This document shows, piece by piece, positions 12,067-54,601 of a stretch of 64,000 bases of DNA. A model generated the notes under the pieces. The model was not told the DNA's origin and did no database searches. It worked only from the letters and a program-made list of their open reading frames with translations. The DNA is from Trichosphaerium sp. ATCC 40318 (Eukaryota > Protista > Tubulinea). The stretch is taken from positions 186,001 through 250,000 of the forward strand of contig JALMLS010000374.1 of NCBI GenBank assembly GCA_038496445.1. The letters are read 5' to 3'. Made by a program: the position numbers and the translations under genes. Numbering within the stretch: the first letter of the stretch is position 1; each line of letters begins with the position of its first letter.

Positions 12067-13558
12067 TTATTGCTTGCTTCGGGGTTTGTATTTCTTTGCT
12101 TCTTCGAGTTCACGTTGCATGAACCAGATTGACCTGTTGCAAAAAAAGTTAGAGCCGAAAAAAAAAAAAAAAGACTACAAACAAATCTAAAAAAGTTCAA
12201 TGTTTTCTGACGTACCCTTGAGCGGCAGTACCTTCCATCTTGGCAGCCTAAAAAATTTATCAGAGAAAACCATTGTATTCTATGCGGAGAAATATAGAGT
12301 CCGTTGAACACGTGAACGAGTGGGTACTCAAAAAATTGCTCGAAGTTTTTAGTCATCGCTTACCTTTCTTACAGCTGCTTCAGCAGTCAATACAGCGCGG
12401 TTCAAAGCGGTGTTATCAGAAGATAACAATTGCTCTAGCTCGTTCTTAGCAGCATTACCCTAAAACAGGCATTAAGAAATGAGTGAAAATTTTTTCAATA
12501 TTTTTCCTTGTTTTCAAAAAAAAAAAAATTATTGAGGTTGTATTACGGGAAATGCCTATTAACGTACTCTGACACCACCCTTGGCGCTCTTGGCTTGAAG
12601 TTCCTTCTTTTTTGCCTCAATTTTCTGAACATTACAGTAAGGGAGAGATACTTCTTTCGAAAATTATTAATAGAAACGTACAGCAATCTCAGTTTGGACA
12701 GCTTTTAGAGCTTGTTGAGCCTACATACGTATTTAATAAAACCGATACAGTATAGGAAATAAAACGACACATCTGGAAGCATAAATGTAACGAAAATCCA
12801 AATATTCTATTTTATCCACACAAATGAACGGTTTGTTTCGCTTCTTCGATTTTAGGTTTGTTCGCTTCAGTTTAGGTTATCAGAATACGTACTCTGGCGA
12901 GCATCTCATTAGTTCCTTGAGGTCTCTCAAGCATGACACTGATCTTGAATTTGTGTCTGAACAACAAATACTCAACAAGAGCCATCCTAAACGAAAACTA
13001 TTAAAAATCGCGTAAAAAACCGTCAAAAAAATTCATGTAGTCACGTGCCTTTTGTTAAAGTCCATATCAATCTCTCTTAGTGAGTCACGGAGTTCAACAA
13101 CACGCTTGGTAGTACCTAGACAAAGATTTTAAGCGTTTTATTGTAGTTTTGATTTCTCAGCTTCAACAAAAAGTTTTTGACCAAAAAAACGTACCAATCT
13201 TCTCCAAAAAGCGGTGAGCGTTGAATTCATCCAAGTCAGAGCCCTCATCACCTTTTTCAATGTCTAATTCGATAAACTAACATGCGCAGTTAGCGTTAAT
13301 CCTAAAACGATTTCTCTAAGGTAAAGTCGCCGTTTTTACCATGTTGACATATTTCCATGTGTTTTCGAGCTCGTCTTTCTTGTCTCCGAGTTCTGAATGG
13401 CGTAAATTAACCTTTAGTGATGTGAGAACGTACCAGGCCAGAAAGCATTGAGAAAGAAGGTAGCTAGGTAAGTCAGAAAAAGATCCTTCCCGTTTTGTGT
13501 TTTTAACAGTACCTTGATCGCGGTAGAGTCTAGAGGTTACGTCTTTAAAGGTTGTCAT
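12067..13558 (-). CDS. 34-kDa calcium-regulated actin-bundling protein family (Dictyostelium ABP34-like)
   Basis: Spliced: YRDQATFFLNAFW...DLDEFNAHRFLEKIG...LREIDMDFNKRMALVEYLLF...PQG...GGVRGNAAKNELEQLL...GSIWFMQRELEEAKKYKP. Confidence 0.85.
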
Positions 13559-13820
13559 TGTTGTACAGGTGGTTATGAACTGGTACACAAAAAAACCGTA
13601 CATCGACTTAACTGCAGTATTTTCAAAAGCCGTGGTAATGAGTCTCTGGCTACTGTGAGAGCTATAACAAGGTACATAAATATTCAATACGATTATTCCG
13701 CTGTTTACCCGTTGAGCGCTCATTTTTATGCTTTAATGCACAATACTACGCGCGTTTATAGTGCTCAAAGCTTTGTTACACTTTCCGAGAGACTTGAAGG
13801 AAGTTAAAAAAAAATACATT

Positions 13821-15057
13821 TCAGCAACACTTTTCTCGTTTTGTACAATCTCTGGACTTTTGAAATCTCATACACGTCCATGCCACTATATGCCTTATCA
13901 TCTTATCCATATGAGAAGAAATATAATGATCGTCATCAAACAAAACAAGCTCAGAAAACTGAACTTTTTCATGGAGTGATATTGAGTGCCTAAAATCCAC
14001 TTTAGCATCATTAGAGCCATGTAAAATTAATAACTTGGCTCCGTTTTTTATACGACAGGTGAGATCGTCACCTATCACGTGTGGATTAGCACGAGGATAC
14101 AAACTGGGTTCAGGTTTACCTGTTTCAGAAGTGGCAATAGAGATAATACCGTTAACGTCGTTTTTGAGACAACCACTTGCTATTGCTGAGGAACTACAAT
14201 TGTTCCATCCTAGTACAACTGCCAGTGATGCTCTGAAATGATATCTCGCATATTTTATAGCATGTAGTATAGAATCTACGCTATTATTGATGTCTTTTGG
14301 GTTTTGTAAAAAAAGAATTATGGTTGCAATGCCTGTGACATGTGTTAAACACAATTATGTCAAACTTTATGAGTGTACCCGTATCAGAAAAAGCACTTAC
14401 TAATGCTGTGTAAGCTCCTTTCGGACCATGGAAGGAATACTCTTTGTTGGTGATCATAACAACCTAAAGAAAAAAGTGAGTTGTTTTTTGGATATTTCTT
14501 AATTTATTCGTACAACTCCTGTTGGACTATAACATGGACACTCACAGAGTGCTCGTGCGCCATTAGAGAACAAATGCGTGCTTGTCATGTGTTGCCAAGA
14601 GTCATTTAGTTTGAAATTACCGCCACACTTCGCAATTGAAACAACTCTGTTTGCTCCTTGTTCCCAAGTAATGGCTTCGCCCGAATCTGTCCCTAAAGCC
14701 TGTACATTTAGTTTTAAATGGTATAATACTATAGAAAACGATATTTTTAACGTTGCAGAGATAAACTCAGGGTGTTTTAAAAGAATCTTACAGATTTGTT
14801 ACAGATTTTAATAAAAAACAACGGTAAAAACAACACCACGCGCCTATAAAGTATTTATATTCAATCTGTACCGTTGACGATGGTAAAACAAGTTTACCAC
14901 GCCAAATATCGCCAGAAGTCCATGACAGCTTAACAGCACGCTTTGTATCCCATGAACAATGAGTATTATCACATACAAATACGCTTTGGCCGTAAGACGT
15001 AGTATACGTTATTTGAACATCAATCTCCAGCTGTTGTGCCAACGGCGCTTGTCCCAT
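13821..15057 (-). CDS. CBM20 starch-binding domain plus alpha/beta-hydrolase-fold protein
   Basis: YTTSYGQSVFVC...WDTKRAVKLSWTSGDIW...IEYKYFI|GTDSGEAITWEQGANR; C-terminal LLILHGSNDAKV and DDDH. Confidence 0.8.
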
Positions 15058-15390
15058 TGCATTATAGGATTACAAGTCGAATAAAAACTCTCTGAGACAG
15101 GTTTTTGGTCAAAACGGGATTTGCCGTGCTAAATCATGCTTTGCGACAACAAGCTAGCTTTCTTCAAACCACAATAAATGAGTACGAAAAACTGATTCAT
15201 ATACTAATCTACGCTTATATGTGCTTATACTTGGATGTACATTATTGATAGCTTGAGTACCCCACGTGCTTTACACCCGTCAATATAACTGATGTTCATT
15301 ATTTACCTAGTTCCTATATCAAAGTGTACAGAGGCGCCTTGTGAGCATGTTCTTGTGTTCACTGCGTTGAAGTTCCTCTTCTTGTGTTGT

Positions 15391-16212
15391 TTATACAGTT
15401 CCAAGCCATTTTATACCCAATGATTCAACATAGTCTTTTGTAATCTGACTGAATGACCAAATCTTTATAAACTTTAAAGATGTCAAGTACTTTAAACAAT
15501 TATTTGTAATAAATCTACAATTTGTTTCTAGGTGCTCTAGATTAACCAAGTGCTTCATACCTTCATCTGATATTTCTCTACAATCAAACAAGGTTAGTTT
15601 CTTGACATTCGTCAATGCTTTAATCCCATCATTTGTTATCTTAGGTCCATAGAAAACAACAAGCGTGTGCACATTCCCAAGAAGCTTAAGAAAATCATCT
15701 TTTGGACTAAGTGTAATCTTATGTACATTCCTTAATGCCTTTATTCCTTCAACTGTAATATCACATCCAAGAATCTCTATAGTGTGTACACCAGTAAGCA
15801 TCTTTAATGCATCATCTGTAATCTTTGTATAGCCCAAGTTAATCTCATGAATTGTGTTCTGTCCTCCATTTAGTAGCACGTGTATACCTGAGCATGTAAT
15901 ATTTGAATGCTGTAAGTCTATGTTGTGAACACCTTGGAGGTTTGCCAAGTCGGTTAATGATAGATTCACGTGGCTACATCTAATTTTGGTGTTTTTGAGC
16001 AATGGACTGCCTTTAAGTACAAGACAATCCTCTGCTGCTGTATGATTTTTCAACTTGAGTATACTGAAGCCAATATTGTGCCTAATGATATCATTGAAGA
16101 GATGACAGACTGCAGAAGCCTTAATAAGATAGTTTTTACTAATATTACGTAAAATATGTGTTAAAGTCTCTGGTGGCAGTTGGTGGACAAGGTTACCTTG
16201 TTTCGATGACAT
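15391..16212 (-). CDS. Intronless F-box/LRR protein with diverged GVHTI-type repeats
   Basis: F-box LPPETLTHILRNI...AVCHLFNDII; LRRs LQGVHNIDL, LTGVHTIEILGCDIT, LTNVKKLTLFDCREISDEG. Confidence 0.88.
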   Translation of the reverse strand: MSSKQGNLVHQLPPETLTHILRNISKNYLIKASAVCHLFNDIIRHNIGFSILKLKNHTAAEDCLVLKGSPLLKNTKIRCSHVNLSLTDLANLQGVHNIDLQHSNITCSGIHVLLNGGQNTIHEINLGYTKITDDALKMLTGVHTIEILGCDITVEGIKALRNVHKITLSPKDDFLKLLGNVHTLVVFYGPKITNDGIKALTNVKKLTLFDCREISDEGMKHLVNLEHLETNCRFITNNCLKYLTSLKFIKIWSFSQITKDYVESLGIKWLGTV

Positions 16213-16481
16213 CAAGCTCGTGGAATGTGTTTAAAGAAATACCAAGACTGGTTTTTTTTCGTTCACCTCATTTAAACTCTCGTAACATACCGTCACAAAT
16301 GGCTGCCTGTGCAACACCAAACTCTGCCGCTCCTACTTACTTAACATACCTTACGACCGAGTTTTGTTGCTTCGTTTTGTATTTTGGACACGTGATTTAT
16401 ATATCAAAAACAATACAAAATTGAAAGTCGAGCTCGGTCAATTTTCGTATAATTTGACGGCTGTAATACGTTTAAAACGTT

Positions 16482-18503: not shown

Positions 18504-21500
18504 TCACTGCACACTACTCTTTGGTGCTATCTTAGTAGATTGGGTGCTGTAGGCAAAGTATCCTATGATAGCAGCTCCAACAACAACAGGAACAACCAAA
18601 ACAGCCCAGCTCCAGTTTGTTGTCTCAGGCTCGAGTATACTAGGATCTAATTCGCACTTAACTACCTTCAGTTCTTTTTCAATAAACTTAACAACAGTCT
18701 GAACTTGTTTGCTTGGTGTATCTTGTATCCACTCCTTTTGAGGTAAAATACGACTATACTTTTCCTTAACAGCTCTTGCTACTCGTTTACGGTTAGTACA
18801 CTGTTGAATGAGCTCAAGATCATCATTAAATTCCTAAGCAAAATAAGTATTAATCACAGTTTAAAGTTGCTTCATTAACAATGACGCACAACAACAAGAA
18901 GATGCTTCTTTGCAATTTCTAAGTAGTGTATAACACTAGTTGATAAAGCTTTTATATCTCTGGCTTCTAATAGACTATGTACATCCACTAAGAAGCCAAA
19001 CAAGCATAAGAACCTGAAGTAGTTGTTAAAAAACAAAATCAACAACAAAAAAAGAACTTACACGTGTATCACTTCAATGACTTTACTCTCATTGCTATGC
19101 TTCTTCAGAATTTCTATATCTAAACAAGAACATACTATTAATCGCTGCTTCAAGGTACAATAAACAAATACATACCTAAACTAACTTTGTGTAGTGTTCT
19201 TGGAAAATCTTTCCAATTCATTGTATTCCAATCTCTCTTTAGGGGCTTAATCCTTTCGAAATCTAGCCAGTATCTATGTTCTCCTAAGCATTGAACAAGT
19301 TGTCTAAACAGTAAGGTATTAATACTAAAATAACATCTCTCTAGCATTGTACTTCTGGACATCAGCACGTGGAAGATCAGAAAACTTATCAAGCTCAGAA
19401 ACCAGTTCATAGATAGATGCCATCAAATTAGGCATTGTTTGTGTCTACGAGTGCGTCTGTAAGAATAAAGAAAATTAAAATAACACCGCGGTGTAGACGT
19501 ACATCTTGATTAAATGTTACAGTTGTGTTATATTTATAAAGAGCTTCAAGAGCCTCATTCTGATTTATTGATAAATTCTAGAAAAAACTTTTAAGTCAGT
19601 GCTGTGTTGACATTAAAAAAAACCTAGGTAAAATATCACGTGCATGCATAGATAATGTGAGTCCAAAAATCTTCTCACAAAGAGCAACTTCAGTAGTTCG
19701 CTTCTTACACCTAAGAAAAATAGTCATGTTAACAAAACATTATCATCTGAATTCTAGTATACTAGAGTTTTAACACACGCACCACTTGAACCCTTGAGCC
19801 ATATTACATACATAGTAGAAGAAACAAAGTTCTCCATGAAGTGAATAAAATGCGGAGTCTATTAACACCTACACCAATCAGTATTAGAATGCAACTTAAA
19901 TTGATGATTCATAAAAAAAAAATTCGGCTCACGCACAAGAAGTTGTGCTTGTAAGTCTCCTGTATCTCCATGTTCTTGAATAGCCATATCGTGCTGCGAC
20001 GCTATAAACCGTGCTATTTGTTTTAAAGTATCAGGGGATATCTTACCACTCTCTAAAGCAGGTCATGAACAGTCAAGTCTTAAGGCATCAAGCAGAAAAA
20101 ATATACACGTTACTCACCTAGAAACGCTTTTGTACGACTTAGAATATAGCTCTCCCTGTCGAATGTTTCAGTTGAATCTAGATCATAAAGTAAGATATTT
20201 TAGTGGTTGTATGTTATTTACCGCTGTAAACAGAGAGCTCGTGAAGAGCTGCATTAACAAATCTTTGATTTTTTTCAGCATCGAATAATTTGATTCTTTC
20301 ACTCATAAGAACGAAAGATTGTGGACAGTAATCTTTTTGGTATTGTGGAATATCGAACACAAAAGGAGTAGCTCCAAAATTAAGCTTTAAGGATTCTCCT
20401 TGCCTAGCAATACCTGCATGCCGTAAACGTAAGGTACCACGAGACTTTGAGTCAAAGATATTGGGTTTTTTCTAAAAGCAGCAAACAATTGTTCAACTTC
20501 TCGTACTTATATAAGGGAATAAGAATCCTAACTGCTCAGAAGGTATATTATGGGAACTGGTGAATTCACCATTCCGTGTAAAAAACACTTGGCCTGTGTC
20601 ATAGTTTAACCCACATCTTTTATTCAAACAAAAATGTCAGAAAAAAAACAAATCTTCATTGTTGTTACATACCCTATTACATCGCCATCAACCCACTTTG
20701 GATTTCTATGCGATGAACCAGGAAAACCAAGCCATACACTACCATCCATACCCATATATCCATAACTCTATAGATGTATGAGAATCAAAACGGCGAAATA
20801 ATTTTCATGTAACATAAAACAATCACGTGCCTCTCTGAACATTCCAGGTGCTACAAATAGCTCTCTTTCTTCATTCCTACAAAATGGAGCTACTCCAATC
20901 GCTATATAACGACCAAAATCATCTTCTTCAACACTACTTATAGTTCATACAAAGCAAAACTTTCCTTTCTTGTTGTTCACTGAAAGAATTAAACGTACTA
21001 CTGTTTTTCTTGACAGGTCAACTCAAAATAGCCAATATTACATTGTGCTAGTGGAAGTGGCCATAAAGGAAGACTTCCTTGTAAGCACCAAAAGAGTTAA
21101 GGTTAAAACAATCCGTTGTTTCTCAATTGGTGTTTTTTACCGCTGTATCCGTGTCAAACAAAAGGACGTTATAGGATACTACTTGACCAAGACTTGCTGA
21201 TTCTGGGTATTGTACTACAAGACCATTCGGTCCAACATACGTCCGTTGTGGTGAAAAAGGCACTATAGTGCTACCCCTCACGTTGCGAAGGTACATAAAT
21301 ACGAACTCTTGGCGCCAGTCGATTTTAGAGCTTAGTTGCTTTGCACTTAACAAAAATACGGTAGAACACATTTGTCGCCATAGCCTTTGACTTTTGTGTA
21401 TTCTATACAGCCTACAGTGCGTTTGGAGAAAATGTATAAAATCTCTGGGTTCTAAGAACCTAAATACAGCTTAGACGCGTAATATAATACTATGTAGTGC

Positions 21501-27841: not shown

Positions 27842-30075
27842 ATGAAAATAAGAGAAGCTACTCTTCTGTTAGGTATCACTCAACAACATGCAAATAGTAC
27901 ATATCATCTACACGTGCTCACGTTGCGTTTTAGGATTTTTCTTATCATTTGTCGCGTGTTGTTCTGTTTACACCGAAGTGGATGGTTCTGATTCTCTAGG
28001 GAACGGATCGTTAGAAAAACCTTTCTATTCACTCGCAAAGGCAGTGTCTATGGTTGATGGACCGTCTGAATCATTTGTAGTATGCATCGGAGGCACGTGT
28101 TTTTACTGAAAGATCCAGCTTAATATTGTCGGTTATTTACACGTGTTACTTGTTATACAGGTGGTGTATATAACGATACAAATAATAAAATTGAAATAAT
28201 AACACGTGGCGATGTTTCTATACGTAAGTTTTATGTTAACGCTTTATTACCTCATAACTTGAATGGATGGGTATGTTATGGTGTTTGCTATAAGTTATTT
28301 TAACTATTGTTACAATAGACTATTATAAAAAAGAGTGGGTCTCTTGAGGTTGACGAGCTGAGCAGTTCTCTCAATTTGCAAGTTGCAAGTTTTTTAACAA
28401 TCACGAATTGTACTTTTAATGAAAAGCTTCATTGTACGCTTACGGCACTTCCTACTATGTAGGGAAACGGTATGTGTATTTAATATTACTATAGTGACTG
28501 TAGTTGGATCGGAGAGTACTAAGCTTCAAAATGTTTGGTTTAGCGAGAGCAATGTTGAGATAAATTCCAAGAAAGATATTGTTCTTGAGGATGTTTCGTT
28601 TTATGATGTTAACATTACTCTTATTTCAGGTTAGCACAGTTATAAAAAATGAGTTAACTTGGTGGGCAGGTGATAACTTGGTAATAAACAAGGGTCATTT
28701 CGAAGAGCAAAGAGCAACTTTTTGGCTACAGTCAAGCAACATTTCATTCATCGATACAGTCTTCAAATACAGTGACATCATTGTATGTATAACTCTAGAT
28801 CCATGCAATATATCACACTTATATCTTTGTATTAGCCATCTCATCCATTCATGAGTATTACAATGACTAAGTCACTTACAAACTCTAAAACACTTGATTC
28901 GGAATTAAAGTTTCTGAATTGTAGTTTTTCAGATGTTGTAACTTCTCACATGGTCAACAATGATAATGATTTGTTTACAATAGCAGAAATAACACCGCAA
29001 GACGTAAGTAAAGAGTTGTTTTATCGGAATAACCTAAATGAGAAACCTAGAAAGGAGACAAATACACATTTTCTTTAGAAGTAACTGGATCGGAGTTTTC
29101 GAACAATAGAGTTGTACAACAGGTGTCCAGCGAGAAGTGTTTGACTTGGTATAATTCTAAGTTTCTTATAAGGGATATGTCATTCACTCACCACCATTTC
29201 ATGTTGTTGAATCAAACGAAGTCACAGTTACTACATATTTTCACAACAATGTATTCAAAGACAAAGGTAACTAGAAGTTCTATTTTCACACATGCTAATG
29301 TGATAGTTGTCTGCAAAACATCCGGGTATTTCAGTCATGAGCATATGCTCACTTGCAAGCCTTGTATATTAGGGTCTTATGCCGTGAATACCAGCGCTCC
29401 TGAGTGTACTCTTTGCCCACCAGGTATCTCAACGATAGATATGAGTTTTTCTAATAAAAAAAAACAGGAACATTTGGCAATACCACAGGACTATCCGATT
29501 GCTTCCCTTGCAGTTTTGGCACTTACAGTGAGCAGTGCGTTGTTTTCCCTGCCTTCTACATTTTACATCTATACCTAGGTACGGTGCAACAAGTTGCGCT
29601 GAATGTCCACTTGATAGTACTTCCAGTATAAGCGCTAAAGGCTGTGATTGCAATGCAGGTAACTAAAGCAGCGTTGATAAGCTCTGTTGATTCTAATGGA
29701 AGGGTACTACTGGAAAGAAAACACATGCAAGGAGTGTTTTTTCATGACATCTGATGTTGGATCTACAAAGTGTATAAAAGGTAATATCATACTTTGATAG
29801 TACTATGATCAATAAAGCGCTTACACTAATAGTTGGATTGCTTGTTTATATAACTATTGGTGGATCTGTGTTGGTGTTGATTTTGGTGATTGGTACATTG
29901 AATTCCATTACTCAGTGTACTTACTTCCTCAGCAGTTATAGTTGGGTTGTGCATTGCTTATAGACGTGGTAAAAAACCAATGGCATATGTATCAGTTAAC
30001 TCAATTGAAAATAATGACAGTCTTTATCGTGATAATGATAACTACAATGACGATGATAATGACGACTCACAGTAG
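27842..30075 (+). CDS. Type I membrane protein with beta-helix-like ectodomain and Cys-rich (GCC2/GCC3-like) repeats
   Basis: Signal peptide, GSDSLGNGSLEKPFYSLAKAV, CKPCILGSYA...CTLCPPGTFG...CAECP...CDCNAGYY, TM, acidic tail. Confidence 0.75.
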
Positions 30076-30104
30076 TTGTTAAAAGAAATAAACAAAAGTT
30101 AATT

Positions 30105-30389
30105 TTATCTGAACAACAATTTATGTTCGAATTTACTCCAATCTAAAATCAGTTTGCACAGAAACAACACAATAACTTGGTACACAATAAGATAACCTAT
30201 TTTCTGTGTTAAACCTTGAACATTAGTCCTAAAGAAAGGAGACAATAGTAAGTTTTTCTTACTGATTAATAAAACTTTACTAGAGCAACAACTGCTTACA
30301 TATTGCACATGACGTGAAATAATTTTGCTGAATGTTTCCCAACTAATTAGTTTTGCACCTACCAGTGCACTTATTCCTATAGCCATCAT
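30105..30389 (-). pseudogene. Out-of-frame C-terminal cap of the adjacent F-box/LRR gene
   Basis: GISALVGAKLIS matches the cap GIIALVGARLIT of the 44461 gene and overlaps the stop of 30386-31600 in another frame. Confidence 0.55.
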
Positions 30390-31600
30390 TGATAGATAGT
30401 GTGTGCACCTGCCAATGCTGCAATGCCATTGTCTGTTATTGACTCACAACGATATAGGTCGATAGTGTGCACACCTGCCAATGCCTTCAAACCTTCATCT
30501 GTTACATTTGTAAATGATAAATTAGTCTCATGTACACCTGCCAATGCTGCAATGCCATTGTTTGTTATTGAATTACAACGACATAGGGAGATAGTGTGCA
30601 CACCTGCCAATGCCTTCAAACCTTCATCTGTTACATTTGTAGCTGATAAATCAATCTCATGTACACCTGCCAATGCCGCAATGCCATTGTCTGTTATTGA
30701 CTTACAACTATGTAGGTTGATAGTGTGTACACCTGCCAATGCCGCAATGCCATTGTCTGTTATTGAATTACAACTATGTAGGTTGATAGTGTGTACGCCT
30801 GCCAATGCTGCAATGCCATTGTCTGTTATTGAATTACAACGATATAGGTTGATAGTGTGTACACCTGCCAATGCCGCAATGCCATTGTCTGTTATTGACT
30901 CACAACGATATAGGTTGATAGTGTGCACACCTGCCAATGCCTTCAAACCTTCACCTGTTACATTTGTAGCTGATAAATCAATCTCATGTACACCTGCCAA
31001 TGCCTTCAAACCTTCATCTGTTACATTTGTAGCTGATAAATTAATCTTATGTACACCTGCCAATGCCGCAATGCCATTGTCTGTTATTGACTTACAACTA
31101 AATAGGTTGATAGTGTGTACGCCTGCCAATGCCGCAATGCCATTGTCTGTTATTGAATTACAACTAGATAGATTGATAGTGTGTACGCCTGCCAATGCCG
31201 CAATGCCATTGTCTGTTATTGAATTACAACGATATAGGTTGATAGTGTGTACACCTGCCAATGCCGCAATGCCATTGTCTGTTATTGACTTACAACTAAA
31301 TAGGTTGATAGTGTGTACGCCTGCCAATGCCGCAATAATGTCGTTTGGTAGCTTACATCGGCTGAGATCAATAGTCGTATTGTGGAGTAATGGACTACCA
31401 GAAAGCATCTGAACTTTAGTTGTGTTTTTAGTACGGATACAACCATACCCAACATGGTTGTGAACAATATCTCGTAAAAGATGGCATGTTTGGGCTGTAC
31501 GAAGCGTATACGTCCCTTGTTTGAGAATATGGACTATTAACTCAATTGGTAGCGCAACAAGGTCGAATACTTGGTTGAACTGTGCTTGTTGTTGTTCCAT
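30386..31600 (-). CDS. Intronless F-box/LRR protein with 14 complete, near-identical LRR units
   Basis: F-box LPIELIVHIL...TCHLLRDIV; ten 22-aa LAGVHTINLxxCxSITDNGIAA units and four 21-aa LAGVHxIxLSxTNVTDEGLKA units. Confidence 0.92.
   Translation of the reverse strand: MEQQQAQFNQVFDLVALPIELIVHILKQGTYTLRTAQTCHLLRDIVHNHVGYGCIRTKNTTKVQMLSGSPLLHNTTIDLSRCKLPNDIIAALAGVHTINLFSCKSITDNGIAALAGVHTINLYRCNSITDNGIAALAGVHTINLSSCNSITDNGIAALAGVHTINLFSCKSITDNGIAALAGVHKINLSATNVTDEGLKALAGVHEIDLSATNVTGEGLKALAGVHTINLYRCESITDNGIAALAGVHTINLYRCNSITDNGIAALAGVHTINLHSCNSITDNGIAALAGVHTINLHSCKSITDNGIAALAGVHEIDLSATNVTDEGLKALAGVHTISLCRCNSITNNGIAALAGVHETNLSFTNVTDEGLKALAGVHTIDLYRCESITDNGIAALAGAHTIYQ
30400..31335. repeat. 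Coding tandem repeat of 66- and 63-bp units
   Basis: Recurrent cctgccaatgccgcaatgccattgtctgttattga and cctgccaatgccttcaaaccttcatctgttacatttgta. Confidence 0.95.
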
Positions 31601-32130
31601 GTATGATCACCGTTAGTTTTCGTTAAGACAATGTTATAAACTAAAAAGAGAACTTGAGGGATTAAATGCGTTTAGCTGGGTGATATTAAATTAAACACTT
31701 AAGGAGCTCTATCAGAAAATTCACTAAAATTTGCTCTCAAATCGTACTAAAAACATACAAGAGGTGACTTCAGAAGCGTGTAAATGTGTGGAACACATCC
31801 GGTGGTTTTTTTTCCCCATGTTCACATGAAAGTCACAAACTTCACGTGAAATTGTTGTAGCTGACACCGAGACTATATTTCGCTCAAAAGAACGAATAAC
31901 AAGTGCTATAGATACGTTTAAGAACGTCTCCTGAAAAAGAGATGAATCTAAGTTCAAGAGAACTACAATCGCTATAAACACTCCCTAACGCGTTAATAGT
32001 ATATATAGCTTGTATTCAATCCAATGGCGGGCAATAAAATGTCCGTTCACGAAAGGAATTTCGCTAAAAAGAAAAAATATTGAATTTCCACAGCAACAAA
32101 TTATTAAAACAACACCAAGATAAACAACAA

Positions 32131-34332: not shown

Positions 34333-37288
34333 TTAGTTATCAATGCTAGCAGAAGGTGTTAAATATATAGGCTCGGTTTCAGAGTAAGAATTCTGATGTA
34401 CATCCAAACTTTCATACAGTGGAAAATCGATATCTGATTCATTGTTTTCTTCTTTACCAATACCCTCAAGATCTACCAATATAGACTTGAATAATGGACG
34501 TTTCTTAGGATTAGAATGCCAGCATTTTTCAATACAAGAGCGCCATGAAGGTGTAACAAATTCTACAAAAAAGAAAAAGTTAAGATTCTGATATCTCGCT
34601 ACTTTACAACTAACCTGGTAATTTCAATCGTTCACCTGATATTACCTTAATAGCCCAAGACATACAATTAAATCCTGAAGGTAAAGGTGTTTGTTGACAA
34701 TGTATTTCCCACCTTAGAAGAAACATGAGATCGAAAAAGAAGGGTACAGTTATTGCTACAATATAACTCACATTAGGATTGCAAAAGAATAAACATCGGC
34801 GCGTCTTGAATAATTTCCTGAATGATCTAGTATCTCTGGTGCCATCCAAGCTAGTAAAGCGTTAGATTAACACACCAATACTCTAATAACATACGTAAGG
34901 CCCCATGTGTACCACTAGCTATTCCTGAAGTGTACTCACGTTTATCTGTTAAAAAAAATTAGCCAACATTGAGAAAACATACAAATGCTCACCAAGTACT
35001 TTACTCAATCCAAAATCTGATACTTTTGCTCTACCACTTACATCTAACTAAGAAAAACTTAGCTAACAACTAGAGTTAATGTCACATACCAATACATTGC
35101 CACTGTTGAGATCTCTATGTAGTATTGGAATCGAATGCAAGTACTTCATACCACTTTACAAAGTTAGTACAAAAAGCCTGATCAAGATTCTAATTATGTA
35201 TACCTTGCTATATCTAGAGTTATCCTCAATTGCTTAGGTTTTGATAGAACACCTTTCTTAAGTACATCTTGAAGTGTTCCCCATGCCATGTACTAACAGA
35301 ACGTGAGTATTGTTGAAACTAATATAAATACAATGTTACCTCAAGAATCAGGTATTTGTCTTCCTCATCCTCTAAGCATGCTCCAAGAAACTGAACTATT
35401 CTTGGGTGCCTTACTTTTGTTAAAACATTCAATTCATCAATGAACAGCTGCTCTATAAAACAAATGTTAGGAATACGTTTTATGATGATTTTTTCTTTTG
35501 TTACCTTTGTCTTTATTTCTGAAATGCATCTTTGATATTATCTAAAAAAATGTTAAGAAAAGACTCACCTGATACCTATATACAATACCTTACAAACAAC
35601 TTGCTCACCATGCCATTTTGCAAGCCGTACTTCAGCAAAGAAACCCTGTTGCAGAAAAAGTAAGAAAACAAATGGAATTGAAGATCTTGTACCTTTCCTA
35701 GAACCTTATCTTGAAGATAAATGTCTTCTTTACTAATACCCCAATTTGTAACTGTTTGTAGTAAAGTATAACTAGACAATAACTCAGAAACTTTGGACCT
35801 TAAGTCTTCCAGCTCTGCTTTTTGAATTGCATTGATCTTTTTCTGTTTGGCCAATTCTGTTCGAATCTCAAGATCGCTTCTTCCATCGTCTTTTGATGTT
35901 GCACTTCTCCTCCTTGGACGTGGAAGAATACTTTCAGATACACCTAACCGGGATATAGGTTTTAAATCGGCGACTATAGTTGGTGATGAAGCAGATTTAA
36001 TGTCAAGTTCGTCATTGATAGTTTTTGTTAATCTATTTGAGTTTTTTGCTGCCTCGATTGTCTTTGCTACTAAAAGGTGTCCAGAGCGTTGAGAACTTCT
36101 TCTCTTCTGTGAGTCATTATAGCTACTCTTTGAAACCTTCAAAGCTACTTGTGCTGCGTTTGAGAAAACATAAAGGTTCTCTGAATCGAAGGTTATTCCG
36201 GCAAGAACATTGTACTTTGTAGGCAATGCCAGATGAACAATACGTTTTGTCACAAGGTCAATAACAGATATAGTATTAAAACCATCGGTACAATATATCA
36301 CGTGAACATCCTTATCATAGTTAATGTATATCTGCTTGACGTTCTTTGGTTTTGTTAGAATATGTCTAGTATCACGTTTTTTAACATCAACAATATGTAT
36401 CTCGAACCCGCCTATAAATTCGAATGCCACAGCAAATACACCAGGAGATATAAAAGCCACATCCTCACAATGCCATTTACCACGTGATTTTGAGTCTTTT
36501 TTACTCCAGCAAGCACTTACACTTCCTGTAGAGTCAACTTTATAAATACCTTTTTTGCAAGCCAAATAAATATTTCCTTGCATATCTGTTGTCATCCCCA
36601 TACTTCCTTTAGCGCCACTTGCTCTAATAGTTGATTCATCTACTATAAGTGATACTCCACGCCTTTTTTTAAGTACTTCTACAACGGCATCAGTGCCTAT
36701 AGTTGCAAATATACGATCTTGATGCGAATCAAAGTACACGATTAGAGCAATCTATTACAAAACCGTTAATGGCACTTTTTTTTTCTTACTTTTTCTTTAA
36801 AAATCACGTGCGTCATCTTCGTCGTAGTCTTCTAATCCTACTAAGATCCTAACAATACCAGTATTTATATCCATGCTAATGATACCATCATTCGACTCAG
36901 CGAGTATGAGCTACATGAATAAGAAAAGGAACAAAAAGATTAAAATAATAAAAAAATCCTGTCATAGCCGGTTTTAGAAAGATGCTAAAATGCCGCTTTT
37001 ACCTTTGATTTACGTATAGTAATATCGTTTATCGAATCCAGAAATATTGTTCGCCCTTTTGCGGTCTTGTAGCCTTATTTCAAATTAAGCTCAAAGATAA
37101 CTCGCTAACGTACCTTTTTTCGCGCAGATATTACCTCCAATCACCTCTGCGGTGACTACTAAACGCTCTTGTTCCTGTTTGTTGTTAGTGATATTTTTAT
37201 GTGTAATAGCGCACCATAGAGGTATCTCACTACGCTCAAGAAACTGTTCGGGTCGTTGATGTCCAGTCGAATTCTTGTTAGTCCACAA
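34333..37288 (-). CDS. TKL-family protein kinase with N-terminal beta-propeller-like region (start uncertain)
   Basis: LGKGFFAEV, HPRIVQFLGAC, ILHRDLNSGNVL, VSDFGLS, WMAPE, DVYSFAILMWE, CWHSNPKKRP; upstream GMTTDMQGNIYLA and GITFDSENLYV. Confidence 0.88.
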
Positions 37289-44165: not shown

Positions 44166-44460
44166 GGCCATGCGTCACGCCAGCCAATATATATCAAACA
44201 CGTTTTTTCAACAAATTTTCATCCTTTTTTTTTCAAAAGTATCACGTGTCAAATTGGTGTTATGTCTTTTCCTGTTGGTTGTCTATGGTAAATACTTGAA
44301 GAAGAAACACATCTGGCGTTTCAGAGCATGCAATATAAACTCCATAAGGTACATAGTTTACACTTTTGAAAAAGTACATACGTTTTACGTCGCTTTAAGT
44401 CAAACCACTATTACAACCTCACCCAGACATTACCCTTAAAAGCGTTCTATTATCTACAAC

Positions 44461-45639
44461 ATGAGTTTAATGCAGCTACCTACAGAGATATTAGCCCACA
44501 TCTTGCTTCACACAACAAAAGCGCGGTTTGTAGCTTGTCAAACGTGCCATCTCATTGCTTCAATCGTTCATGATGTTATTGGGTACGAAGAAGTGAAAAT
44601 TACAAATATCTCACAAGTGCAGCCGCTTTTAAAGCACCCCAGCACTCTTCGGAAAACAAAAATCTGCCTACATGGACTTTGTTTTAATGATAACATTATC
44701 AAGCTATTTGCTGGCGCTCAAAATATTAACTTTAGCGAGACTGCAGTGACGGACAAAGGTGTCAAAGAACTCGCTGGAGTTCATACTATTCATCTCAATC
44801 ACAGTAAAGTTACTGATGAAGGTATTAAAGCACTTGCTGGAGTTCATACTATTTACCTTCAAAAAACGAGAGTAACTGGTGAAGGTATTAGAGCACTTGC
44901 TGGAGTTCACACTATTTCTCTCCACGGATGTAGGAAAATAACTGACAAAGGTGTCAAAGCACTTGCTGGAGTTCATACTATTCGTCTCAGTTTCACTCCA
45001 GTAACTGACAAAGGTATTAAAGCACTTGCTGGAGTTCACACTATTTTCCTTCACAGTTGTAGCAATGTGACAGATGAAGGCGTTAAAGCGCTTGCTGGAG
45101 TACATGAGATACACCTTAGTGGAACCTCAGTAACAGATGAAGGTGTCAAAGAACTTGCTGGAGTTCATACTATTCATCTCAATCACAGTAAAGTAACTGA
45201 CGAAGGCGTTAAAGCACTTGCTGGAGTACACACTATTTTTCTTAGTGGTTGTGAGAATGTTACAGATGAAGGTGTTAAAGCGCTTGCTGGAGTACATGAG
45301 ATACACCTTAGTGGAACCTCCGTAGCAGATGAAGGTGTTAAAGCACTTGCTGGAGTTTACGCTATTTTCCTTTGTGGATGTAATGTTACCGATGAAGGTG
45401 TTAGAGCACTTGCTGGAGTTCATACTATTTCTCTCCACGGATGTAGGTATATAACAGACAAAGGTGTCAAAGAACTTGCTGGAGTTCATACTATCCACCT
45501 CAATTACACATCAGTAACTGACAAAGGTATCATAGCACTTGTTGGGGCAAGACTTATTACTGCCCTTAGAACTGCTGTAACTAAAGAAGGGGCTAAATCT
45601 TTAAAAGGGACTAAGGTTATTAGTAACCATCGCAAATAA
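44461..45639 (+). CDS. Intronless F-box/LRR protein with 12 LAGVH-type units
   Basis: F-box LPTEILAHIL...TCHLIASIV; repeats TDEGVKALAGVHTIxLxx. Confidence 0.92.
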   Translation: MSLMQLPTEILAHILLHTTKARFVACQTCHLIASIVHDVIGYEEVKITNISQVQPLLKHPSTLRKTKICLHGLCFNDNIIKLFAGAQNINFSETAVTDKGVKELAGVHTIHLNHSKVTDEGIKALAGVHTIYLQKTRVTGEGIRALAGVHTISLHGCRKITDKGVKALAGVHTIRLSFTPVTDKGIKALAGVHTIFLHSCSNVTDEGVKALAGVHEIHLSGTSVTDEGVKELAGVHTIHLNHSKVTDEGVKALAGVHTIFLSGCENVTDEGVKALAGVHEIHLSGTSVADEGVKALAGVYAIFLCGCNVTDEGVRALAGVHTISLHGCRYITDKGVKELAGVHTIHLNYTSVTDKGIIALVGARLITALRTAVTKEGAKSLKGTKVISNHRK

Positions 45640-46373: not shown

Positions 46374-46609
46374 TAAAAAGCAGTATTTCGTATTGTACTG
46401 TCATATTATTCAAAACGTTTTCGCACGTGATACAGCTATACGTATTGTTGGAGTACCAACATTGATATAGTGTTACACTGCCATAACAGATTCTGTGGAA
46501 TTCGTTTATTACTAAAATACCGCAGGACGTTTAAACAAAGAATAGTTTAAGTGAACAGCAACTTAATCCTATTCGGTGTTAGTACAATACCCAACCTAAA
46601 ACCTCCACA

Positions 46610-47427: not shown

Positions 47428-48774
47428 TTACAAGAGAAGTAAAAGCGCAGAGCAAATCAATACAAAGAAGACAGAAACAGTGGTCTGGATTGATCCGGAA
47501 GGAGGTGTAGTTCCTGTAGAAGGAGCTGGTGTTGTAGGTGGAGGTGTTGGAGATCCAGCGTCAGCTAGCACAATTGTTTGAATGCCGGCTGCGTTGGCTG
47601 TTAGGATAGCTTCTGGCACAGGAAAGAAACCAAATTCCTCTGTACTATTCTGACCTTTAGCAGATAGCGCATACTCAATAAACTCAACAATAAGTTGACC
47701 TTGTTCACGTGTCAAGAAACTTAAATCCTCGTAGATTAAAAAGTAACTGAACGTTGTGACTGGCCATACGCCGGAACCAGGTTGGTTGATTAGAGTGAGC
47801 TCGTCCCATTTGTCTGAGTTTGAAGGAGGTAAGTTGTTTAAATCTTGAGCTACTGCTTCGACATTTGCTTCTTCAGCTGTAAGGAACTCTCCTTCTTGGT
47901 TTTGAAGAGCAGCTTCAACGAGTCTGTTTGTTCTACCAAAACCAACATCGACATATCCGATTGTATAAGCGTTTGCTTTTAGAGCATCTGACATTGCGCT
48001 CGATCCTTCAACTTCAGTTGTATTAGCTGGAAAAGGGAGTTCTTTGCCTGTTCCCAATACCCAGACGCCAGGAGCAGCACTTGCGAGGTATTCAGAAAGA
48101 TTATTTGTAGATGAAGACCCATCTTTACGACGAACAACAAGAATAGGTTGGTTAGCATCTACAGTGAACCCAGGGTTGTCAGCCTACACGAGAACACGTT
48201 AGAAGACCAACTAATTAATAAAAAAAAGAATAAAATAAATTTCAAAAGTCACGTGACTTGCCATTATATCAGGGTGATCCCAAGTAGTAATATTCCTTTG
48301 AAAAATCTTTGCGGCGACTGCAGCAGTAAGATTTAATGTTCCACTGAGCCTTTCTGAAGGTACATTGTGGAAAATATTGACGGCACCCAATAGAAAAGGG
48401 ATGTGAAGTACTTTTGTATCACCAAGTTGTACGTGTTCATCGTCATTCAGTGGTACATCAGCAGCAGCCCAATCGTTGTCTCCTACAAAATTATTAAAAA
48501 AAATCAAAAAAAAGATTCTTTAAGAAATGTCTTTCATCACGTGCTGGTTGTTTTACTTACTTGCTAACAGGTCTGCGATACCTCCACCTGATCCAATTGC
48601 TCGGTAATCAATCGTAGAGGTGGGAAAATTTGTTGATTGGGCCTTGTAATCAGGAAACCAAGCGTCGGTAAAGAGACGGCTTGGGTTTGTAGTTCCCGAG
48701 CCCTCAATTGATACCTGAGCTACTGATCCTGCGATAAACGCTATCAATATGATGTTTAATGCTGTTGAAGCCAT
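47428..48774 (-). CDS. PstS-like phosphate-binding protein, secreted, probable GPI anchor, 2 introns
   Basis: Signal peptide; IEGSGTT, IDYRAIGSGGGI, DWAAADVPL, ITTWDHPDI, RKDGSSST, IGYVD, LQNQEGEF, WPVTTFSYFLIY; Pro/Thr/Ser linker and hydrophobic tail. Confidence 0.9.
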
Positions 48775-48840
48775 TAGGGGGATTTATGGGGATGAAGTGT
48801 CACTAAATCGTTTCAGCTTAAGTAAGATCACATAAACAAT

Positions 48841-49407: not shown

Positions 49408-52400
49408 TCATTTTAATTTTGGATTATCAGTTTCTTTTCCTAACCATTTTTTAAATACAGTAGGTCTCGTTTCTAAACACAAAACTTAAAATTAACAAGG
49501 TGACTACGAACGTTAAACACTGAAACAAAGAAATCAAAAAAAATACTTCTCAAAAAAACATACCATAACACTTGTGTTCCCAAAGTAGCTTAGGTTTCTT
49601 TCTTCTTCTCTTACCAGATAGTTGTATATCTTCTTCTACATAGTATACTTTCCAAGAGAATAACCGTTCATCCCCTAGAACACATTGAGAAAAAAAACTA
49701 GCCAACATTTCATTTAAAAATGTCCAAAAAAAAAAGCCCATGTTCAACGCTATGTCAATCACGTGCCTTCATGGTATTTATTCCAGTTACGACAAACATA
49801 TTTACCAAAACCCTAAAGATATAATTAGGGCATTTAAATGTGAAACAGAATAAAGTTGAGTACCAAACGTAAATAATTTACATTCCCACCATTGTATCCG
49901 TTCTCAAAAAACTTGAACCACCTGTGACTTTTAAATGCTTGTTTAAAGCTTTTAGGTCTGGAAAATGGGATATCCTCATATGAATTAAAGTAGCGTGGCT
50001 GCCAGTGACGCCGTGTAATAGCTACGACAGCGATTTAGAGAAAAAAACAAGAAAAAGAAAAGGGAATCAATAGTAACATAAATGTCACAACTAACCTCCA
50101 TTTTGAAATAATTCTATTGCCTTTCCGTTAACTTGATCACCGGGCATAACGTAATACCTAAAAAGAAAACAATCAGTCAGTGGCAATCAAAAAAAATGAT
50201 CATCCATCCAAAAAAAGAAAAGTACCATGACTTCTTTGGTGGATGTGGTGCGAACATGCTCCATTCTTGTTCAGTCCTTCAAGCTATTAAAATTATGTTT
50301 GGGTTATATTTAGTTACCTGAGTGTCCAAATAAGCCCATGTAAAGGTGTACCAATCCTGAAAAAACAATCAAACGCATGCTATTTTAATTGGGTTTTTTC
50401 AAAAAAAATCAGTTGTAAGCATGCTACTGTACAAGCTGTACAAGCCAACTTTCTTGGTTGATCAAAGGGAGTATATATTTTGTGTGTTTTCAAAAGAAAG
50501 ATAGTGTGACGCACATGTGAATGTCCAAAGACTCAATGTTCCAGAGAACAATCTGTAAAATGATAAAGCCAATGAATACCGCTTTTACAATACTGAATGT
50601 ACACTTTACTGTTTCTTTGGCTTTCTTATATTTTACCTTATACTCCCTTTGTTTGTTCGTAAAGCCAATTTTTGTAATAGATTTGCCTGGTGGCAATGAT
50701 AATTTCGAAGAAAGAGAAACAGCATGGAAAAAATCAAAAAAAGTTCCAATGTTCGGTATCTTTTTGAGTACAAATCCTACCCTACAAATACTTATTAGAG
50801 AATGTACTTGCACTACAAGAATATAGAAATATTCACTTATTACCATTCAAGGAACCAAGAGAATGGAGATATAGTAAAAACACCAAGAAATGCATCAAAG
50901 TTTTCTAGACTTACTCCTGTTACAAACATGTTAGGTGGTGACTTGTTTATTCCTATTCAAGTGATACTGTGTACCTTTATCTGTTATAAATAATAGCCAC
51001 TGATCAGTATCAGTAATCTCATCTCCATCTGACGCTACGCTTCGCTCAACATCCTTAAAGTCTAAATAGAACTTGGCTATGAGGTAAACTTACACATGAA
51101 ACACGCACTGGCATGATTGTCTTGTTCAGAATCGTCTTTTTTATCTACAACACTATTACTGCTTCCATATATGCTATTAATACTATTCATTGGTAGAACG
51201 CTTGTATCAGGAGAAGTCAAAAACGTCGATACCAGCCCACCAATAAATAAGCCGAATGTTGAAGTCTAATTAAAATGTTAGGCATTTAAAATCAGGATCC
51301 TTACTATACCTCGTTATAGTATACCCTAGATCTCTTCCTCGATGCAGTGCTAAGATATGGGAATATCATATCATCCCAAACTAGAGAAGGAAAGAAAGCT
51401 AAATACCCAGCAAGTGGACAGAAGAAAAATAAACCTGTTATAAAAAGTAAGTAAACATACAAACGATATGAAACCAGATGTCGCTTGTACCTAGCCTCAT
51501 ACTAATACCCAGTCCGAAATGCATGCCCATGAATATTAAACTACCTGCTATACGACAATACTGTGTATAAAAAGGAAAGAAGAATAAAACAGGAGCAAAG
51601 AATTCCCTAACACGATATTTGAAAAGAGCTTATAAACAAAGCCAGCGACATACGTGTACATAACTGTCCATGTCATGATCTTACAGAAGTAAGGATAATT
51701 GCGCAAAAACATACCAAAAGGCATTGTAAAGTAATCAAGATTAAGCGCGTAATAAGTAGCAGTACCTGTACTAACGTTAGAACAAAAAAAAACTGAGAAC
51801 AGAAAAAAAAAAAAGGGAAACCTTTGAAAACACGTGCCATCTTCGCGCCATTCTTTTGAGTTCTTATGGAATGTTGATACAGTGTATATCAAAAAATATT
51901 GTAGTAGCCACCCAAATGTAGCAGCACTGAATGCTAAATGCGCACGTGATTCGCTCCTGAAAGAAAAAAGTAAATACTTTCTTTGAAACACTTTAAAAAG
52001 AAAAAAGTTATCTACACACCTTGCACTAAACGCAATAGGCCCTTTCTTACTTTTTTTTAAATTCCTTAATGCGGCATCAACTGACCAATACTACAAATCA
52101 TATAAAAACGCATACACTAGACAGAAAAACAAGCAAAACTTCAAATTTTTTTCTTCTGCTTTTTTTGTCAAGTTCACAAGATTGTCCTCCATCCGTACCT
52201 CTCCTATTGGACATAACATCAACCAGAATAACGTCATACGATGCATGACATCCCCACTGTGTCCAATAAATATAAAACTAGCTTGAAGACTACAAAGCAT
52301 CCACCATGTTAAGAATGTAAATAACCTCGTATAGAACCCAATACACATCATAAAAGCGAAGAACATGTGTAATAAGAAAATACAACGTTGACCGTTTAAA

Positions 52401-52730
52401 CTTGAGTTAATATGATGAAATGTAACGAATTGAGGCCGTGTTGTCCGTTCTAGGTACTCGTGGTGTTTTACAATACCGTCATTTGTATAATGCGGTATTA
52501 ACTCGTCGTATCGGTTTATTAGATCGCCAATGACCGAATAGAGGGTAAGCAAGGATGTCAAATGACGTTTTGCGTTCTTAAGTATACCAAAACGCTCGTA
52601 ATTATCTCATACGTACCACCAACGCGTAGAAAACGCGACATAGAGCTAAAGATCGTTTATCTAGGCTAAACATTGTTTTTAACCGATTATATACCCCACC
52701 ACCATCTAAACTAGGTCCGTGAGTGCGCAT
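49408..52730 (-). CDS. HTTM-domain multi-pass membrane protein
   Basis: LDKRSLALCR, IGFYTRLFTFLTWWMLCSLQ, HSGDVMHRMTLFWLMLCPIGEYWSVD, WREDG|TATYYAL, QEWSMFAPHP, YVCRNWN. Confidence 0.88.
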
Positions 52731-53316
52731 TGCACTCACTGGCACTGTGTGAAGCTGTAATTTAAGTTAAGTGAGACTGTAGCAAAGTAAAAGGACTGAC
52801 AAAACCAAATTGCAGTGTTGGTAAAATTGCGCAAGTATTGCATTGTATCACGACATGTAAACATCAGAAAAGCTGTACAATTAAAGCAGAGAAGCTAGAG
52901 AATATAGGGATTGATTAATTCCACGCATTACCCGATTGTAAGACAGTACACTGTAGGATTTAGAACTACAACTATTTTTTCAACTTAAATCACGTGCGTT
53001 CCTTTTTGTTCGTGAAATACTGTCTAATGTTTATTTTTTGGGAAACAGCGTAGTACTTGGATAGATGTATGATTTGGTAGTATCTAGAAGGGGATTTCAA
53101 ACCCCGCTACAAACCCCGTGTAACTTGAGACATCAGGGAACAAACTGAACAAAAAAACCGGTAGGAAAAAAACTGTTTCAAAATAAAGCTAAAAAAAGGT
53201 GAAGCATATGATCACTAACTTCAGTCGTAACATAATCACAAGTCAACAATTTTCCATAAAACGTTTCTACTGCACATAATTCCAACCATAGTCAAGTCTC
53301 CATAATTTTTATAATA

Positions 53317-54601
53317 ATGGAACTAACTGATAAACAACAACAAATATGGTACATATCCACTTGTTATTTTTTTTTAACATTGCTCTTGTTGTTGAAAGAC
53401 ATCTCCACTATTTGTTTTAATATTAACCTCCGATACAGGTCTTTAATGTTCCGACGCCAAGAGGGATATGCTAATAAGGCTAAGAAGATTATAAATGGTA
53501 AAGACCCGTGTAAGCTATATTTCCACAACGGTCCAAGAAAGGAGACACTACTCCATCTTATAGCACGTGATAAAGTAAATGGACCTGCATTGTATAAAAA
53601 TATAGCTGGTGCTATTCCTACCGACGCAGCTGATACATTTGGATGGACTGCGCTTCACAGTGCGGGTAAGCAAACCAAAAGGACTTTTTTTACGTTTTTT
53701 TGTTGAACATTTACATAAATTTATTTCCCCTCGTCTCACGTGACGTTGTCCGTTTTTTTGCTCTTCTAATTCTATTTATTAGCATGTGAAGGTAATCTAG
53801 TCGTTCTAAAAAAGCTTATAAGCGATGGTGCTAAACCCACTGCGAAAACTGGAAATGGATGGAGTCCTCTTCGGTTAGCATGTAAGCCATTGTGTCCTCA
53901 TTATACTCCTTACTCTTTTTTGAAGCATTAAAGGGCCATTTGGATTGTGTAAAGTGTTTATTATCAAAAGGAGCTTCGTTGAAAGCAAAATCAAAACTAG
54001 GATGGACAGCACTATTTGTTGCAGGTATGGATCTTTTTTTACAATGTTCAGTTGAAAAAAAAAGTTAAATGAAATCCTGGAACTTCGCTTTTGTCACGTG
54101 ATACCAATCTAGATTATTTTGATACACGCAAACTCTTTGGTATCAAAATACGTATCTTTCTTTTTTACAAAAAGCGTCATGGCGCCGGCACAAAGCGGTT
54201 TTTTGCTTGTTCAAATAAAAAACACTCAGCTGACTTTTTTTTTTTCAGTACGTGAAGGTCATCTAGAAACAGCGACGTACCTATTGGAACAAGGCGCAAA
54301 ACCGAATTGTAAAGATAACGAGGGAAGTTATCCACTTCACAGAGCAGCAGAGAAAGGATACGACGAAATAGTTAAAGTTCTAGTTAAGCAAGGAGCAAAA
54401 GTTAATGTACGAGATAAAAAAGGTCATACGGCATCTTACTACGCAGGCACGTGACCTACGTACTAAAACCAAGTACTTATTATGAAAATAGCAAACGAAG
54501 GATTCACAGATATTGTATCTATCCTCGATGATAACGGAGCAAAGGGCGGGAAACTTCGTAGCTCCAGATTGTTTAATAGTTTCTCAGGGAAAGCAGTGTA
54601 A
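53317..54601 (+). CDS. Ankyrin-repeat protein
   Basis: GWTALHSAACEGNL, GWSPLRLA, GWTALFVAVREGHLE, GSYPLHRAAEKGYDEIVKVLV, GHTASYYAANEGFTDIV. Confidence 0.92.

Follow-up and report, generated by a model that had tools for sequence, protein, structure and literature searches.

CACGTG at the 5' splice sites of GC-AG introns in a 64-kb window of Trichosphaerium nuclear DNA

Few bases in eukaryotic genes are as strongly conserved as the T at position +2 of the splice donor. Canonical introns that begin with GC instead of GT (GC-AG introns) are removed by the major spliceosome, and ordinary spliceosomes accept GC donors that otherwise match the consensus. The palindrome CACGTG is known as the E-box or G-box of bHLH-ZIP and bZIP factors (Myc/Max, USF, Cbf1/Pho4 and TFE; TCACGTGA core), and we know of no case in which such a site is tied to the +2 base of a splice donor. 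In bacteria, very-short-patch repair enriches a short palindrome genome-wide and depletes its one-mismatch neighbours. This report concerns ten introns that read as GC-AG, eight of them with the 5' end GCACGTG, in a 64-kb stretch of Trichosphaerium sp. ATCC 40318 DNA (contig JALMLS010000374.1, positions 186,001 to 250,000), referred to below as the window. GC-AG introns amount to about 0.5-1.6% in most eukaryotes, and to 1.59% in the amoebozoan Pelomyxa schiedti (PMC8887013). GC donors accumulate by GT>GC change in mammals (PMC2490688), and GC 5' splice sites rely on compensatory or auxiliary signals (Kralovicova et al. 2011, PMC3167603). No publication describing a coupling of GC-AG introns to CACGTG was found in the literature on GC-AG with CACGTG or GCACGT and on Amoebozoa.

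The window is eukaryotic nuclear DNA with 37% G+C, compact and with many short introns (median, 68 nt); it carries neither toxin nor virus genes. A homology search with the exon encoding its HTTM protein gave the amoebozoans Pyxidicula, Vermistella and Arcella as the nearest named relatives (35-43% identity); no close relative was found in the representative search, where the best match had 43% identity, but the homologues were still adequate for collinearity. The original prediction had listed at least eight GC-AG introns with the 5' end GCACGTG and a ninth with GCGCGTG (14843). All nine lie where it had placed them and on the same strands. The eight hold and the ninth is confirmed, but the total was an undercount, since a tenth intron is present at 48184-48261 (minus strand). 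The introns are as follows, with a slash for the exon-intron boundary.

12987-13048, minus strand: GC-AG intron of 62 nt, donor AAG/GCACGTGAC, in an ABP34-like gene (actin-bundling, EF-hand-like).
14693-14843, minus strand: GC-AG intron of 151 nt, donor TAG/GCGCGTGGT, one mismatch from the motif, in a gene with a CBM20 starch-binding domain.
19578-19643, minus strand: GC-AG intron of 66 nt, donor CAT/GCACGTGAT, in an F-box/SPRY gene; the case that the original prediction had called probable.
20768-20830, minus strand: GC-AG intron of 63 nt, donor GAG/GCACGTGAT, within a SPRY domain.
28093-28160, plus strand: GC-AG intron of 68 nt, donor GAG/GCACGTGTT, in a gene for a secreted beta-helix/ephrin-receptor-like repeat protein.
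36752-36811, minus strand: GC-AG intron of 60 nt, donor GAC/GCACGTGAT, preceding a 391-codon exon of a beta-propeller and kinase gene.
48184-48261, minus strand: GC-AG intron of 78 nt, donor ATG/GCAAGT followed directly by CACGTG (+7 to +12); the tenth case, absent from the earlier list.
49675-49766, minus strand: GC-AG intron of 92 nt, donor AAG/GCACGTGAT, in the C-terminal part of the HTTM gene.
51766-51837, minus strand: GC-AG intron of 72 nt, donor ATG/GCACGTGTT, within the HTTM domain, in frame and stop-free.
54447-54491, plus strand: GC-AG intron of 45 nt, donor CAG/GCACGTGAC, the last intron of an ankyrin-repeat gene.

All ten introns carry GC at +1/+2 and finish in AG. Apart from the 151-nt intron at 14843, their lengths are 45-92 nt; eight have a T content of 0.40-0.54, and the remaining two have 0.24 and 0.27. 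None of the ten donors resembles the U12-type consensus ([AG]TATCCTT). At each of the nine sites listed earlier, the reading frame is open upstream, read-through meets a stop or interruption (at 51837, 24 extra codons instead), and, 45-151 nt downstream, a T-rich tract is followed by an AG at which the frame opens again. Judged from the sequence, the eight GCACGTG sites and the GCGCGTG site are confirmed to behave as 5' ends of short GC-AG introns, and the best reading of the set is that of ordinary U2-type GC-AG introns of an amoebozoan-like protist.

The position of the tenth intron is fixed by a transcript. The gene at 47431-48774 (minus strand) is 100% identical over 396 residues to the complete open reading frame (ORF) P0272 (Transcript_21260) of an MMETSP transcriptome, which appears to derive from the same organism as the window. 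The 396-aa ORF fits the gene only after removal of two 78-nt introns. For the segment 48184-48261, which is absent from the transcript-derived ORF, the transcript alignment allows a sole placement with canonical ends, ATG/GCAAGTCACGTGAC...GTGTAG/GCT. The organism therefore does splice at a junction where the donor in the genome is GC. The second intron, placed by the same alignment, provides a control.

48483-48560, minus strand: GT-AG intron of 78 nt, donor GTAAGT, with a GCACGTG 17 nt inside that is unused as a donor.

The in-house gene finder miscalled the 48184-48261 intron, choosing CAC/GTGACT with a support of only 0.6, which shows that it under-calls GC donors. The gene is expressed, as seen from the P0272 match, and encodes a homologue of bacterial-type periplasmic phosphate-binding proteins (PBP; Pfam PBP_like_2) with, by eye, an N-terminal signal-like segment and a C-terminal hydrophobic one. 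Other relatives found were metagenome proteins, about 27-31% identical. The gene was possibly acquired horizontally and may later have gained its two introns.

The protein junctions quoted in the original prediction (DFNKR/MALVEY, PGMFRE/SYGY, YHE-G-DERL, WREDG/TATYYAL and YYA/ANEG) were all reproduced, and at six of the nine sites the junction is collinear with homologues or with fixed domain geometry: two in HTTM and one each in SPRY, ankyrin, the EF-hand-like loop and CBM20. Single short exons flanking the junctions were mostly too short to score in Pfam and PDB searches, where usable coordinates came only from CBM_20 and RanBP9. At 51837, 72 HTTM homologues were aligned across the region, and 56 of them were gapped by 23-24 residues exactly over the 24 codons of the window; the nearest homologues have EWKID/GTAVFYALNLDYF in place of the EWRED/GTATYYALNLDYF of the window. 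If this intron (51766-51837, minus strand) were retained, the HTTM protein would gain 24 hydrophobic residues with its frame unbroken, which makes the intron a candidate for regulated retention. At 49766, homologue coordinates run unbroken across the junction (for example, P0125 with WNKRHEG/PERLHSF against WNKYHE-G-DERLFSW in the window), and two high-scoring segment pairs abut exactly in nine homologues.

At 20830, the downstream exon starts at SYGY, which corresponds to residue 144 of RanBP9 (SYGYHGDDG; PDB 5ji7) in a weak match (E=4.2). The upstream exon ends in PGMFRE, and GT alternatives insert or delete residues at this point. RanBP9 presumably reads PGWDKH there, with the same spacing. 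At 54447, the ankyrin register is kept only by the GC donor itself (GC+0) with a 45-nt intron, which aligns GHTASYYAANEGFTDIVSILDDNGAK with the preceding repeat GSYPLHRAAEKGYDEIVKVLVKQGAK; no in-frame GT alternative preserves the repeat. At 13048, where gene-finder support was 6.6 nats, the D-x-D-x-N-x6-E loop (DMDFNKRMALVE) is obtained from the GC junction only, and the internal-GT alternative adds HFSF and destroys the loop. The Dictyostelium 34-kDa actin-bundling protein probably contains a collinear VDVNFDGRVSFLEYLL. At 14843, the upstream exon matches positions 3-67 of 97 of Pfam CBM_20 and ends in ...YKYFI, equivalent to residue 68 of beta-amylase 1cqy. The spliced product has a conserved W ten residues after FI, as in 1cqy (W78), and GT alternatives add 3-8 residues.

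The junctions at 19643, 28093 and 36811 were set solely by reading-frame logic and the in-house gene finder, which gave them 5-15 nats of support even with a 3-nat GC penalty. At 19643, the frame closes after 15 codons of read-through, GT sites offer no sensible alternative in frame, and gene-finder support was 11.5-14.5 nats. At 28093, read-through stops after 5 codons, the sole GT alternative is a poor donor at +6 (GTTTTT), and the support of 14.7-17.7 nats was the highest of the GC set. At 36811, read-through meets a stop within 4 codons, the 391-codon exon (35579-36751) begins at the acceptor, and GT alternatives delete at least 10 residues; the 391-aa exon had no homologues within the length range searched. 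Three other GC "introns" were rejected: the one at 37520 (GCGTGAT) joins two genes after a C-terminal villin-headpiece-like exon, that at 3267 (GCGCTAG) merely bypasses a frameshift in a BCS1-like gene, and the ORF upstream of that at 46423 is non-coding. Several further candidates with low support were called by the gene finder at zero GC penalty.

GC donors were found in 10 of about 148 introns of the window (6.8%), which bears out the earlier claim that GC-AG introns are far above their usual share of about 1%. GTACGT is, as had also been proposed, the commonest donor hexamer (25 of 146 supported introns), and the species donor consensus obtained with a position weight matrix is AG/GTACGT. 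Among the GC donors, eight read GCACGT, one GCAAGT and one GCGCGT. The remaining donor positions of the GCACGTG introns match the species consensus (A3, C4, G5, T6), as predicted. AG lies directly upstream in five of the eight donor copies of GCACGTG, compared with 1 of 20 non-donor copies (p=0.003). Such upstream AG and otherwise-consensus donors agree with what has been described for GC 5' splice sites (PMC3167603).

The base at +2 was coupled to the base at +7. Among G[T/C]ACGT donors, those with G at +7 comprised 8 GC and 4 GT, and those with A, C or T comprised 0 GC and 21 GT (p=3.6e-5). G is not preferred at +7 in GT donors (16-23%), and the GCAAGT donor has C at +7, indicating that the hexamer CACGTG matters and not +7 G itself. 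At intron register +1, CACGTG was found in 8 introns against 0.17 expected. Chance is excluded as the source of the GCACGTG donors. C at +2 is statistically tied to the completion of CACGTG, which fits a force favouring CACGTG over the +2 T.

The excess of CACGTG is not confined to donors; window-wide, its count is about 8-fold above the 8.4 sites expected.

174-62587, no strand assigned: 66 CACGTG sites, with preferred flanks T-CACGTG-A.

CACGTG is the sole NACGTN hexamer in excess, and GCACGTG occurs 28 times against 3.6 expected. T is at -1 in 64 of 132 half-sites, and TCACGTGA has 15 occurrences. The density per kb is about 1.2 in intergenic DNA, about 1.1 in intron interiors (away from the 5' end) and 0.5 in exons. 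By eye, at least one copy lies about 70-350 bp upstream of most placeable start codons, but CACGTG is not concentrated in promoters: other non-coding DNA carries it just as often. Its nine neighbours at one mismatch were not depleted (202 observed and 187 expected), which argues against mutational or repair bias and against miscalling of neighbours as the motif, and for site-wise selection. The palindromic T...A flanks and the equal density in introns and intergenic DNA suggest that CACGTG is a putative site for a dimeric DNA-binding protein. No gene for a cognate CACGTG-binding factor was found in the window. A 1.9-fold excess of CAGGTG, at one point read as part of an E-box family, was dropped as CAG/GTG, the exon-intron junction.

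Pairs of CACGTG sites 11-100 bp apart are frequent (8486-8502; 5176/5241; 34004/34105; 56543/56583; 15877/15967), and in the tightest of them, which lies within an intron, the sites at 8486 and 8497 are separated by about one turn of the helix. The intron at 28093-28160 (plus strand) has two copies, at +2 and at +48 (28140), the latter 15 nt before the 3' splice site. These copies are self-complementary as RNA and could pair, drawing the two intron ends close to each other. About 13 of the 66 sites are at most 6 nt from a 5' splice site, and CACGTG overlaps GT donors in other registers also, as CAC/GTGCGA at 26406 (plus strand) and CACGT/GTAAGT at 19061 (minus strand).

What the analysis shows is the introns themselves, how often they occur, the statistical link between C at +2 and G at +7, and where the motif lies; these can be brought together as follows. 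CACGTG would be strongly favoured, at the DNA level, across the non-coding DNA of the genome. The commonest donor is AG/GTACGT, and when the next base is G, a single T>C transition at +2 would make GCACGTG and complete the motif. With the remaining donor positions at consensus, recognition by U1 and U6 would survive the C at +2, and wherever the benefit of the motif exceeded the cost of the C, the change would become fixed. The outcome would be a high share of GC-AG introns (about 7% in the window), nearly all with one heptamer. Taken whole, this account seems to us slightly better than an even bet; the T>C direction, selection for a bound site as the force and a real cost of GC are what we infer. 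No related genomic DNA was found in two metagenome scans (with the HTTM exon and with the BCS1 alignment) or in one scan of prokaryotic genomes. A variant U1 or U6, which the original prediction had raised, is unnecessary, because ordinary spliceosomes accept otherwise-consensus GC donors; a variant spliceosome would be pure conjecture. No snRNA, tRNA or any other Rfam family was found within the window.

Several points weigh against selection for the motif at the expense of +2 T. All counts come from one 64-kb window, and the support for the eight GCACGTG introns comes from sequence. In the tenth intron (48184-48261), CACGTG follows the donor hexamer and the C at +2 is outside the motif, so that completion of the motif does not account for this C. 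CACGTG is enriched at register +6 too, where it abuts the donor hexamer: 3 introns have it there, and 0.17 would be expected (p=7e-4, uncorrected for the registers tried).

62236-62247, plus strand: GTATGA/CACGTG, register +6, with the weak donor GTATGA.
62576-62587, plus strand: GTAAGT/CACGTG, register +6.
48250-48261, minus strand: GCAAGT/CACGTG, register +6.

Furthermore, 8 of 12 GYACGTG donors are in the motif state, compared with about 58 of 260 near-cognate sites generally (our own arithmetic). The GCAAGT/CACGTG donor, the register +6 excess and this high proportion suggest that proximity of the motif to the 5' splice site, which the account above does not predict, may be favoured in its own right or may assist a weak donor. 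The claim in the original prediction that the motif overwrites the +2 T is therefore upheld in part: C at +2 is coupled to completion of CACGTG, but one C lies outside the motif and the motif is also enriched where it does not touch +2.

The main rival explanation, which is compatible with selection for the motif at the DNA level and does not exclude it, is that CACGTG near the 5' splice site is an auxiliary splicing signal that licenses weak donors, either read as RNA or acting via a DNA-bound factor that slows the polymerase. GC would be tolerated only with the motif inside roughly the first 12 intron nucleotides, and the overlap at +2 to +7 would be the closest position compatible with a donor. 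Such a role would explain why the motif lies within +2 to +12 in 9 of 10 GC donors and in 2 of about 138 GT donors. It also accommodates the transcript-supported GCAAGT/CACGTG donor and the register +6 excess with its weak donor GTATGA, and a dependence of GC 5' splice sites on auxiliary signals is known (PMC3167603). However, the motif is equally dense in intergenic DNA and deep in introns, its palindromic core and flanks are typical of the DNA site of a dimer and not of an RNA element, the register +6 case consists of one GC and two GT introns, and the GCACGTG 17 nt inside the GT intron at 48483-48560 is unused as a donor. We regard an auxiliary signal as possible but doubtful. The same tentative standing is given to its more specific form, in which a bound CACGTG element is favoured at the intron 5' end, overlapping (+2 to +7) or abutting (+7 to +12) the donor, and may license GC donors, for example by polymerase pausing or recruitment of splicing factors.

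A mutational or repair bias that creates CACGTG from its neighbours everywhere (for example, a sequence-specific mismatch correction resembling bacterial very-short-patch repair), with donors swept along passively, would agree with the excess of the motif in every compartment, exons included (0.5 against about 0.12 per kb expected). The undepleted one-mismatch neighbours and the 2-3 times lower density in exons speak against such a bias, and to our knowledge no eukaryotic sequence-specific mismatch correction of this type exists. This explanation is unlikely.

It is more improbable still that the sites are not GC donors, and that nearby GT sites with other acceptors are used or the segments retained. 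On paper, in-frame GT alternatives exist at 13048, 28093, 49766 and 51837, and retention of the 51837 intron, in frame and stop-free, leaves the protein unbroken. The internal GT of the motif (+4), as the original prediction had noted, is out of frame with the best acceptor, and in-frame alternatives need other acceptors that add or remove residues in contradiction to the homologues, the EF-hand-like loop and the ankyrin register. Every alternative at 54447, 36811 and 19643 loses the domain or the conserved exon sequence, those at 20830 disrupt the spacing seen in RanBP9, and the alternative GT donors match poorly (GTGACT, GTTTTC). A GT-only parse of the window lost about 90 nats and truncated genes or deleted conserved residues at every claimed site.

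A sequencing or assembly artefact, in which true GTACGTG donors had their T miscalled as C at a modified motif, is the hardest to credit. A BCS1-like gene with an in-frame TAA and a 1-nt frameshift could reflect assembly errors, but the existence of an intact BCS1 transcript with 84% identity makes a pseudogene the better explanation. Over 1188 coding bases, the translation of the PBP-like gene is 100% identical to the independent transcriptome, TACGTG and other near-cognates occur at the expected abundance, four GTACGTG donors remain, and the motif excess extends to exons with unbroken frames.

The intronless BCS1-like AAA ATPase gene (2799-4219, plus strand) has its TAA at 3093-3095 and the frameshift near 3339-3343, and is 77-84% identical to the intact 452-aa MMETSP BCS1 transcript (P0001). 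Most likely this copy is not the working gene but a pseudogene that has diverged and may have arisen by retroposition. Four scattered single-exon genes of the window belong to one family: 15394-16230 (minus strand), 30389-31606 (minus strand), 44440-45636 (plus strand) and 56161-57105 (plus strand). Their layout is an F-box-like N-terminus with LP.E(I/T)L..IL, followed by LRR_6-type leucine-rich repeats. Opposite the copy at 30389-31606 runs a long open frame (30396-31409), a by-product of the repeats.

A short DNA palindrome whose function is apparently unrelated to splicing seems to have repeatedly displaced the +2 T, and the resulting class of GC-AG introns is several times commoner than normal and defined by one heptamer. 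If true genome-wide, this would be a natural experiment on the selective cost of a GC donor and a case in which a DNA-level and an RNA-level code compete over shared bases. If the motif instead licenses GC donors, the palindrome, beyond U1 complementarity, would decide which introns break the GT rule in this lineage. For annotation, gene finders restricted to GT would truncate or mis-splice about 1 in 3 of the genes in the window.

Compared with the described systems, the window is like very-short-patch repair in having an over-represented short palindrome produced by a sequence-specific force; that system is prokaryotic and has no link to splicing, and in the window the neighbours are not depleted. 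With E-box and G-box sites it shares the same palindrome, the same preferred T...A flanks and frequent occurrence upstream of genes, but here CACGTG occurs about once per kb and is as dense in introns and 3' of genes as in promoters. The introns resemble canonical U2-type GC-AG introns in their GC at +1/+2, 3' AG, near-perfect donor consensus and strong exon end. They differ in making up about 7% of the introns in the window and in that 8 of 10 share one heptamer, whose +7 G is non-consensus but completes the over-represented palindrome. As with GC 5' splice sites that depend on auxiliary signals, GC would derive from GT and last where further signals make up for it. Compensation is known from exonic enhancers and from U1 complementarity, whereas in the window the corresponding element would be a DNA palindrome that overlaps or abuts the donor.

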